From Macrostomum lignano (taxonomy: Eukaryota), in NCBI GenBank assembly GCA_002269645.1, contig NIVC01000658.1:372001-436000 (forward strand): 64,000 nucleotides of DNA. Reading direction: 5' to 3'. The notes below the pieces were generated by a model. It saw only the letters and a program-made list of their open reading frames with translations. It searched no databases and had not been told where the DNA came from. The position numbers and the translations under genes are program-made. Positions 42,801 through 45,800 of the stretch are shown here, one piece after another (position 1 is the first letter of the stretch; each line of letters begins with the position of its first letter).

Positions 42801-45800
42801 GACGGGTTGGAACGGTCACGCCGGGGTGGCTTCAGCCTCCCTCTGTCTGCCAACCTCCCAGGCCTCCCCAGCCTCCCAGCCTCCCCAGCCTCCTCCTCTT
42901 CGTAAGAGAGAGAGAGAGAGAGAGAGAGAGAGAGAGAGAGAGACGAGGGCTGGGCTGGAAAGGCGGGCAGGGCTGGTCGGGTCTCGCAGTGTGCAGCGGA
43001 TGCAGTGGGAGTTGGGGCGAACCTCGGATTACAGCACCAATGGGACAAGCCGCGGAGAGCAGACTATGAGAGGAGACGAGACGAGAGGAGAAATCTTAGG
43101 AGAAGCCGACGGGTAAAAATAGAAGAAGAAGAAAAACGACAGAGAAAAATGTTTCCTCGCTAAACGAGAGGAAAGTGGAACAGATTTTACTCAAAACTCA
43201 AAATTACCCAACGCAGAAATAATGGTTAAAACAGCAGTTCTGACTTTGCTTCTTCTAGCAGCAAATGCAGCCGCTGCGGCAGAAGCAGACAGGGTGCCAA
43301 TCTACGCGATAGAATTCGACTGCAGCAGAGCCGACGCTCCGTGCATTTCAGTGCCCTCGGCGCCGAAACGATTCGAAGCCTCGGTGCGCTACGATCCCGA
43401 CTTGAGGTCGGCCAGCATCGACCTGAACTGGCTGGCGCCCGACACCCTGCGCGGCTCCCGCATCGAGGAATACCGCCTACTCTACCGGGCCGTCGGGCCG
43501 CCCGACCTTGTCAGCTCGAGGACCTACACGGAGGTGCCGTTAAGCCACGGCCGAACCTCGTGGACCCTGCCACCCAATAAGGTGCTATTCGGAGCCGTGT
43601 ACAACTTCAGTCTGTCGGCTAAGAATAACGAAGGCTACGGAGATGTCATCAGTTGTCAGGCCACCGTTAGGGAGGCTCGTGAGTGCCAGAATGATTGATT
43701 GACATGAGCTGGGTTTGGCAGTAATATATATTCGGTTTAGTGCTCTCCATCATCTTACTGAGGGATCACGGGATGCAGATGACATCCCACTGAAGGATGG
43801 AATGCAGGTGAACATCCCACTGAATGATCGGGGGATGGAGGTGACATCCCACTGAATGATCGGGGGATGGAGGTGACATCCCACCGAATGATTGGGGGAT
43901 TCAGGTGACATCCCACCGAATGATCGGGGGATGGAGGTGACATCCCACCGAATGATCGGGGGATGCAGGTGACATTCCACCGAATGATCGGGGGATGCAG
44001 GTGACATTCCACCGAATGATCGGGGGATGCAGGTGACATTCCACCGAATGATCGGGGGATGCAGGTGACATTCCACCGAATGATCGGGGGATTCAGGTGA
44101 CATCCCACTGAAGGATCGGGGAGTGCAGGTGACATCCCACTGAATGATCAGGGGATGCAGTTGACATCCCACTGAAGGATCGGGGAGTGCAGGTGACATC
44201 CCACTGAATGATCAGGGGATGCAGTTGACATCCCACTGAAGGATTGGGGAGTGCAGGTGACATCCCACTGAATGATCAGGGGATGCAGTTGACATCCCAC
44301 TGAATGATCAGGGGATGCAGTTGACATCCCACTGAATGATTAGGGGATGCAGTTGACATCCCACTGAATGATTAGGGGATGCAGTTGACATCCCATTGAA
44401 TGATGGGGGAAGATAGTGAGAGAAGAACCGCCCCTTGAAAGCTTCGCAGCTGCCAATGAAAGCCGAACCCACCGTCATTTCCGAGCAGCCCCATCGATGA
44501 AGCCGGAGTCATTCTCGGTGAACACCAAGTCGGACACTTCAGTAGAAGTTTTCGCTTTGAAGCCGATCTTAACGGGTCGGAACGGGCAGATCACCAACAC
44601 GGAGGTCGCCTATTGGCCCAAAAACGCCATAGACGGTTACGGCTCGAAGAACTTCAGCGTTGAAAACTCTAGCGCCGTCATCCGGCACCTGAACCCGAGC
44701 AGGGAGTACCTGTTCAAGGTGCGGGCCTGGAACTCGGCGGGACCGGGGCCCTGGTCCGATGTCATGCCGGTGAGTGAACTGATTTTGATTGGTCGTTTGA
44801 TTGATCGATTGATTGATTGATAGGTTGATTGACTGGTAGGTTGATTGATTGATTGGTAGGTTGATTGATTGACTGGTAGGTTGATTGATTGATTGGTAGG
44901 TTGATTGATTGACTGGTAGGTTGATTGATTGATTGGTAGGTTGATTGATTGATTGGTAGGTTGATTGATTGATAGGTTGATTGATTGGTAGATTGATTGA
45001 TTGATAGGTTGATTGACTGGTAGGTTGATTGATTGATAGGTTGATTGATTGGTAGATTGATTGATTGATAGGTTGATTGACTGGTAGGTTGATTGATTTA
45101 TTGGTAGGTTGATTGATTGACTGGTAGGTTGATTGATTGATTGGTAGGTTGATTGATTGATTGGTAGGTTGATTGATTGATTGGTAGGTTGATTGATTAA
45201 TTGGTAGGTTGATTGATTGATTGGTAGGTTGATTGATTGATTGGTAGGTTGATTGATTGATTGGTATGTTGATTGATTGATTGGTATGTTGATTGATTAA
45301 TTGGTAGGTTGATTGATTGATTGGTAGGTTGATTGATTAATTGGTAGGTTGATTGATTGATTGGTAGGTTGATTGATTGGTAGGTTGATTGATTGATTGG
45401 TAGGTTGATTGATTGATTGGTAGGTTGATTGATTGATTGGTAGGTTGATTGATTGATTGGTAGGTTGATTGATTGATTGGTAGGTTGATTGATTGATTGG
45501 TAGGTTGATTGATTGATTGGTAGGTTGATTGATTGATTGGTAGGTTGATTGATTGATTGGTAGGTTGATTGATTAATTGGTAGGTTGATTGATTGATTGG
45601 TAGGTTGATTGATTAATTGGTAGGTTGATTGATTGATTGGTAGGTTGATTGATTGATTGGTAGGTTGATTGATTGATTGGTAGGTTGATTGATTAATTGG
45701 TAGGTTGATTGATTGATTGGTAGGTTGATTGATTAATTGGTAGGTTGATTGATTGATAGGTTGATTGATTGGTAGATTGATTGATTGATAGGTTGATTGA

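Follow-up and report, generated by a model that had tools for sequence, protein, structure and literature searches.

Receptors of the LAR family sense ligands (proteoglycans, synaptic partners) through their immunoglobulin (Ig) domains, and an isoform with the phosphatase and the membrane-proximal FN3 domains but no Ig domains would be an enzyme under different regulation. In Caenorhabditis elegans, the LAR-type gene ptp-3 has an independent promoter for each of its isoforms A, B and C (PMC4418752, PMC6133548); PTP-3B consists of five FN3 domains plus the phosphatase domains D1 and D2 (PMC4418752) and has functions of its own (PMC4418752, PMC7281833, PMC6133548). In rat, 5' rapid amplification of cDNA ends (RACE), reverse transcription PCR and luciferase assays showed that a promoter in intron 11 of LAR (Ptprf), where FN5 ends, drives a liver-specific truncated transcript (Welham et al. 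2009, PMC2674045). Vertebrate genes for the LAR-type receptor protein tyrosine phosphatases (RPTPs) also carry the mini-exon meC, or LASE-c, an alternatively spliced insert in FN5 (PMC8711739, PMC2674045). Here we analysed a 64,000-nucleotide window of Macrostomum lignano DNA (contig NIVC01000658.1, positions 372,001 to 436,000 of the forward strand; coordinates below count from its first letter), which contains a single receptor tyrosine phosphatase gene of the LAR family (type IIa), on the + strand. An earlier note on this DNA, made from its letters alone, had proposed that a signal peptide inside intron 11 starts a short Ig-less isoform, and had cited PTP-3B as the precedent, which is a real one (PMC4418752, PMC6133548). 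We find that the end of intron 11 holds an open frame which begins like a signal peptide, continues with coding-like sequence and runs into exon 12, and we tentatively propose that it starts such an isoform.

Results

A signal-peptide-like open frame runs into exon 12

Intron sequence directly upstream of the FN6 exon (exon 12) is open in frame with it, and the coordinates given for this stretch earlier hold. The stop-free frame begins at 43123, and the ATG at 43222-43224 (context aaataATGg) opens an open reading frame (ORF) of 158 aa (43222..43698). Its first 43 codons lead across the AG at 43350-51 to the FN6 exon, where the FN3 domain opens with VPSAPKRF. The context of this start codon is good by Kozak, with A at -3 and G at +4. 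From the ATG, the frame is uninterrupted over the FN6, FN7, FN8/9 and transmembrane (TM) exons for 692 aa. The D1 and D2 exons add ~600 aa and translate stop-free to the natural stop as a separate block; the linking exon(s) between the end of the TM exon (50047) and ~54300, an interval with ~4 kb of repeats, were not located. Together these lengths fit the product of ~1400 aa that had been predicted.

The peptide has a standard signal-peptide layout, with an n-region MVK, 17 uncharged residues and a cleavage motif AEA|D, and its best 8-residue hydropathy is 3.04. Signal peptides were called with heuristic rules of our own (a short, positively charged n-region, a hydrophobic h-region of 7-15 or more residues, small c-region residues at -3 and -1, length ~15-30), at a medium level, which is the level passed by the exon-1 signal peptide of the gene, and at a strict level. 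Eight of the 583 open ATG-initiated ORFs on both strands of the window pass the medium filter, including the exon-1 signal peptide and the candidate, and the candidate is the sole ORF to pass the strict filter, which is optimistic because it was tuned after the candidate was seen. Across the 13 ectodomain exons that were checked, four in-frame ATGs occur upstream before any stop. We also simulated constructs in which each exon kept the 24 nt of genuine intron sequence before it and everything further upstream was random Markov sequence. Per exon, 0.15-0.4% of these trials produced a medium-grade look-alike, which amounts to ~0.03 over the whole gene; at strict grade, 0 of 6000 trials did so, for a gene-wide expectation of <0.003. 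The signal-peptide-like sequence is unusual, yet not beyond chance. Lower-grade look-alikes do arise by chance here, as shown by the ATG-initiated ORFs at 13953 (+) and 37390 (-, minisatellite-encoded), whose hydrophobic cores equal that of the candidate in strength.

The 81 nucleotides before exon 12 are coding-like

Exons and introns of this gene differ strongly in composition. GC content at third codon positions (GC3) is 0.79 in exons (0.58-0.88 across all 20 exons) against an intron GC of 0.45, and over the whole window the observed/expected ratio (o/e) of CpG is near 1.0 in exons and depleted to ~0.45-0.55 in introns. Because of this contrast, codon-based boundary calls are workable here. 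We scored in-frame sequence cumulatively with an exon codon table against intron trinucleotides, and the minimum of the cumulative score, the change point, fell at 43270. Upstream of it, 43222-43269 is intron-like (~-15 bits cumulative), whereas the 27 codons of 43270-43350 are coding-like, at +13.5 bits. The CpG count makes the same step, from 0 in 43217-43269 to 8 in 43270-43351 (o/e 1.09). Upstream of other acceptors, the best in-frame stretch reaches at most 3.7 bits in 16 of 18 cases, the exceptions being D1b (7.9) and the minisatellite before D2a.

The 21 codons of 43288-43350 reach a score that is matched by 0.5% of random or GC-matched stop-free intron windows. The other two frames of this interval score -10.9 and +3.4 bits, so it is coding-like in the ATG frame only. 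We consider it very probable that 43270-43351 is coding in some mRNA. An AlphaFold2 model of 43270-43677 from the single sequence gave the FN3 fold with moderate confidence, and for the 27-residue extension it was uninformative (predicted local distance difference test, pLDDT, <50).

Codon usage, overlap and searches weigh against the signal peptide

The 22 signal-peptide codons differ from the stretch that follows them, and several results speak against their use in translation. Their GC3 is 0.23 and their score -12.3 bits (-22.65 bits when only synonymous choice is counted), whereas all exonic 22-codon windows of the gene have a GC3 of at least 0.41 and a score of at least -4.8 bits. As a yardstick, the signal peptide of exon 1 has a GC3 of 0.88 and scores +19.3 bits (synonymous +21.0). 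GCA, which exons use least among the Ala codons (7%), accounts for six of the nine Ala codons here, and four of the five Leu codons are CTT, CTA or TTG, which together account for 20% in exons. Furthermore, the bases of CTGAC, tttgcttcttct and AG, which encode LTLLLL, also read as the branch point, polypyrimidine tract and AG of a 3' splice site. CpG gave no significant promoter signal upstream: the o/e of 0.91 in 42940-43269 is equalled by 20% of intronic windows.

Outside support was also sought in sequence collections. The 152-aa extended exon had no match in a word-indexed protein database, and in a library of 1.84 billion representatives it retrieved generic FN3 repeat proteins only, mostly bacterial, none of which aligned to residues 1-43. 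The collections searched were without the source species or close relatives, and we count this on the same side. An exact-protein look-up showed that the ORF is not on record, and metagenome scans by protein and by 26-mer gave no match.

One alternative is that nothing upstream of 43352 is ever in a mature mRNA. Intron 11 would then have its open frame, its ATG, the hydrophobic run and the 81 GC-rich nt by accident. Homologue and record searches gave no outside support, the frame is open partly since the region is T-poor (by our own composition estimate, a 43-codon open stretch has p ~0.15), and the window is full of low-complexity sequence that gives L/S/A-rich ORFs. However, chance would have to supply the coding-like 43288-43350 (p ~0.005) together with the signal-peptide look-alike (~0.03 or less), which makes this explanation unlikely. 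A repeat or transposon origin of 43092-43351 was also considered and rejected, as the region occurs once in the window.

A possible upstream 3' splice site of exon 12 as a simpler explanation

The overlap of the 22 codons with a branch-point/polypyrimidine/AG motif offers a simpler rival. Exon 12 of the long mRNA may have an upstream 3' splice site, always or alternatively used, in which CTGAC at 43240 and the tract lead to AG 43257, 43260 or 43269, and the 27-31 residues gained would be an FN5-FN6 linker. The apparent signal peptide would then be the end of intron 11 read in frame, with the T-rich tract giving Leu and a GCN run giving Ala, and the ATG 6 codons upstream of CTGAC would be a coincidence. 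The phase-1 end of exon 11 makes each of the AGs at 43215, 43257, 43260, 43269, 43281, 43284, 43287 and 43350 a frame-compatible acceptor; the earlier note was right that the AG at 43215-16 is in frame with exon 11, as a start at 43217 fits, and the starts at 43259, 43262, 43271, 43283, 43289 and 43352 are likewise in frame.

Several observations favour this splice extension. The codon-usage change point and the CpG step coincide with the cluster of in-phase AGs at 43257, 43260 and 43269, the last of which matches the change point exactly, and in calibration the change-point method fell within +-16 nt of the true acceptor for 14 of 19 exons. AG 43257 lies 14 nt downstream of CTGAC and 21 nt from the next AG upstream, and this CTGAC/polypyrimidine/AG spacing resembles that of known sites. 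In a position weight matrix (PWM) derived from 15 acceptors of this gene, the exon-12 acceptor at 43350 scores -4.6, below all 15 of them (minimum -2.4), and a YTNAY motif is absent there. With the tract and the Ala run held fixed, random upstream sequence yields a medium-grade signal peptide in 7-9% of trials. In addition, vertebrate LAR genes have the alternatively spliced insert meC / LASE-c in FN5 (PMC8711739, PMC2674045). The candidate site thus combines an in-phase AG, a tract, a branch point and coding potential that starts there, and its use in mRNA is a prediction.

On the other side, a splice extension by itself requires two rarities at one exon, a long in-frame extension at the 3' splice site and a strict-grade look-alike with a good Kozak context. 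Such a strict-grade look-alike has a frequency of 1% given the context, and none of 12 other acceptor contexts is prone to it. The PWM score for a start at 43259 is only -6.5, the acceptor tracts of the gene being mostly C-rich. Furthermore, the FN3, FN4, FN5 and FN7 exons start 1-3 residues before P-x-x-P, and 43352 matches this pattern ([V]PSAPK; compare [T]PSAPP, [A]PGKP and [P]APSMKP), and therefore looks like the ancestral boundary. We regard a splice extension with no short isoform as possible, and as somewhat less likely than the short isoform.

The AG at 43215-43216, 5 nt before the ATG, had been pointed out as an acceptor, and its position in the sequence is confirmed. It scores 7.2 by PWM, about the mean of the known sites, and of all AGs in 43100-43352, its cgcAG fits the acceptor pattern of the gene best. 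A branch-point-like TTTAC precedes it by 26 nt, and the nearest other AG upstream is 33 nt away. Used as an alternative acceptor for exon 11, it would insert 45 in-frame residues (EIMVKTAV...CIS) into the long isoform, from 135 nt that make exactly 45 stop-free codons. However, a 17-residue hydrophobic stretch in the middle of the ectodomain is implausible, and the codons of 43217-43269 are intron-like. The PWM favours AG 43216, to which we give little weight because the matrix is unspecific: 143 AGs reach a score >=5, and many of these lie in repeats or inside exons. We consider this insertion very improbable.

A possible route to a short isoform

What stands of the earlier proposal is that the candidate has a standard layout, is statistically unusual, has a good Kozak context, is followed after the cleavage site by a coding-like stretch and continues in frame through the TM exon, with stop-free phosphatase exons beyond. 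The acceptor-like site 5 nt before the ATG, with its branch-point-like motif, also favours the short isoform. What does not fit is that its 22 codons lie outside the coding range of the gene and overlap a splice motif, and that the upstream CpG signal is not significant. Judging from sequence, we think that a short Ig-less LAR isoform which starts in intron 11 and uses ATG 43222 and the signal peptide has somewhat less than an even chance of being real. A rough Bayesian estimate for it, starting from a prior of a few per cent, gave 0.33-0.85 depending on assumptions, and our own assessment was shrunk from this for model uncertainty.

From the open frame, its continuity and the features above, we infer that some transcripts would begin inside intron 11, giving an alternative first coding exon. 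Transcription may start within ~100 nt upstream of 43222, or a short non-coding exon may be spliced to AG 43216. These short transcripts would read through the exon-12 acceptor because no exon-11 donor lies upstream of it. Translation would begin at ATG 43222, the 22-residue signal peptide would be removed after AEA, and the residues of 43270-43351 that follow cleavage would form the mature N-terminus. The predicted product is a type I membrane protein with FN6-FN9, TM, D1 and D2, in which the ligand-binding Ig domains are absent. A short isoform would explain both the signal peptide and the coding-like mature N-terminus, and it has to account for the 22 intron-like codons. It would do so best if the exon is young, or if the splice extension is also true; in the latter case the stretch may have a double role, as branch point and polypyrimidine tract of the upstream exon-12 acceptor in the long mRNA.

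Further upstream, both candidate donors named before (43113 and 42601) are present, as GTs in CGG|GTAAAA and GAG|GTAAGG, and so is the (GA)n tract at 42905, as an (AG)n run to 42943. GA tracts resembling it occur elsewhere in the window, and it is therefore not specific. Joined to AG 43216, the donor at 43113 would define a 104-nt A-rich intron and would remove the upstream ATG at 43149. The short ORF that begins at this ATG would lie in the 5' untranslated region if transcription begins further upstream and the RNA is unspliced. GC is 0.62 in 42940-43112 against 0.36 in 43113-43216.

The wider block 42700-43112 also has a GC of 0.62, contains a CT-rich repeat and the (AG)n run, is purine-rich and ends at the candidate donor GT 43113; the 157 nt after this GT have a GC of 0.36. 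The block could be a non-coding 5' exon or merely low-complexity intron. The GC-rich block 42826-43116 was tried as a coding exon joined to exon 12, and was rejected because every candidate acceptor gives the wrong frame.

The long form and the layout of the window

Exons (Table 1) were located from open frames and splice-site phase bookkeeping, with human LAR as a tblastn query that served for exon finding only; the assignment to a family is based on Pfam and PDB matches and not on this query. Joined, the exons give a 1487-aa ectodomain plus TM without interruption, and the gene has the features of a type IIa RPTP, namely a signal peptide and three Ig domains, 8-9 FN3 domains and one TM, and tandem D1/D2 domains like those of LAR, PTPsigma and PTPdelta. 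Pfam found I-set/Ig_3 three times; of the fn3 stretches, five precede exon 12 and three significant ones follow it. In searches against the PDB, Ig1-3 had PTPsigma, PTPdelta and LAR as top matches (E 6e-54), and D1 matched PTPsigma 2fh7 (E 2e-230) and LAR 1lar (E 2e-225), with other RPTPs all behind. The nearest database relatives are 79-81% identical for the D1 exon (including tick and lamprey) and 47-50% identical for the Ig3 exon.

D1 and D2 are encoded by just two exons each (region 55986-62171); vertebrate LAR genes have far more introns across their phosphatase domains. At the FN7 exon, the best donor, CCG|GTGAGT (44770), leads to phase 0, whereas the exon at 47155 requires phase 1, and only a weak donor 4 nt downstream, TGA|GTGAAC (44774), preserves the frame. 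This mismatch, which touches both the long and the short product, could reflect tandem donors, a missed micro-exon or an assembly indel. The same exon has a NAGNAG tandem acceptor, ccgAGcAG (44484-44488), with both AGs in phase and one residue apart.

The introns are rich in minisatellites. One array (31023-31910) is open in the frame of the FN2b exon for 296 codons upstream of it, and another (~59397-60113) is open in the frame of the D2a exon for 239 codons, with a coding-like score of +22.5 bits. These frame-open arrays are traps for gene prediction. Rfam gave no RNA family match across the window.

Table 1 Exons of the LAR-family gene and candidate elements around exon 12, in window coordinates.
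Feature	Coordinates	Strand	Remarks
Signal-peptide exon, long isoform	744-819	+	ATG 744, donor GT 820, phase 1; joins Ig1 (13671) in frame
Ig1 exon	13671-13964	+	
Ig2 exons	14280-14450, 18810-18923	+	
Ig3 exon	27011-27318	+	
FN1 exon	27686-27980	+	
FN2 exons	30870-30970, 31911-32109	+	
FN3 exon	36291-36599	+	
FN4 exon	37583-37903	+	
FN5 exon (exon 11)	39333-39659	+	phase 1-1; ends ...TTLGL plus G; donor TTG|GTGAGT
Candidate donor GAG|GTAAGG	42601..42602	+	predicted use
(AG)n microsatellite	42905..42943	+	CT-rich repeat 42833-42893 just before
Candidate donor CGG|GTAAAA	43113..43114	+	predicted use
Short upstream ORF ATG TTT CCT CGC TAA	43149..43166	+	
Acceptor-like site before ATG	43186..43216	+	TTTAC (A at 43189), cgcAG 43215-16
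Signal-peptide-like codons	43222..43287	+	predicted cleavage site AEA|D, after Ala22
Candidate upstream 3' splice site of exon 12	43240..43258	+	CTGAC (A at 43243), tttgcttcttct, first AG 43257-58
Coding-like 5' extension of exon 12	43270..43351	+	two Cys
FN6 exon (exon 12)	43352-43678	+	327 nt, phase 1-1; acceptor catttcAG 43350-51, donor GT 43679-80; fn3
FN7 exon	44486-44769/44773	+	
FN8/9 exon	47155-47797	+	
Juxtamembrane exon	48132-48570	+	
TM exon	49797-50047	+	single TM segment
Small exon	end at 54403	+	
D1 exons	56029-56540, 57874-58221	+	
D2 exons	60114-60799, 61970-62171	+	

Discussion

The splice extension has its own parallel among the LAR-type genes, since meC / LASE-c is likewise a short in-frame peptide added by alternative splicing in the FN5 region. 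The two differ in that meC has a micro-exon of its own within FN5 and is about 9 residues long, whereas 27-31 residues would be added here, at the FN5/FN6 junction, through alternative use of a 3' splice site. We found no sequence similarity between meC / LASE-c and the exon-12 extension. If the splice extension is what is real at this locus, it offers a lesson for annotation, namely that an intron end which happens to be in frame can mimic a signal peptide, and that codon usage can expose the mimicry.

The short isoform that we tentatively propose resembles the C. elegans system in that one LAR-type gene would make both a long form with Ig and FN3 domains and a short form with membrane-proximal FN3 domains, TM, D1 and D2. 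The proposed product would have four FN3 domains (FN6-9) where PTP-3B has five, and it is predicted from its ORF, whereas cDNA, mutants and promoter fusions prove the existence of PTP-3B.

The likeness to rat LAR is closer in position: the internal start, proposed here and shown in rat, lies in an intron numbered 11, at the end of FN5, and FN6 onward, TM, D1 and D2 are retained. The details at the 5' end differ. In rat LAR, the 5' exon is separate, non-coding and 805 bp upstream of exon 12, whereas here it would lengthen the FN6 exon on its 5' side; the start proposed for rat LAR is an internal Met in FN6, where SignalP found no signal peptide, whereas the product here would have a predicted signal peptide of its own. 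The earlier note had described the M. lignano gene as having a different breakpoint, and this part of its proposal falls away, as the rat intron-11 promoter, where FN5 ends (PMC2674045), lies near the FN5/FN6 position here. C. elegans PTP-3B and rat LAR intron 11 already provide examples of the short-isoform design, and the breakpoint is not new; the novelty is therefore modest.

Two linked ideas follow this comparison, which we offer as speculation and think rather unlikely to be true. About 50 nt might have a dual role, as branch point and tract on the one hand and as signal-peptide core on the other, and an internal LAR promoter near FN5/FN6 might be an old bilaterian feature, shared by this animal, by rat intron 11 and, in general design, by worm PTP-3B. 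If the short isoform is real, M. lignano would be a third lineage with a short form, at nearly the place used by rat LAR, and such forms may be an ancient side of LAR biology that has received too little attention.

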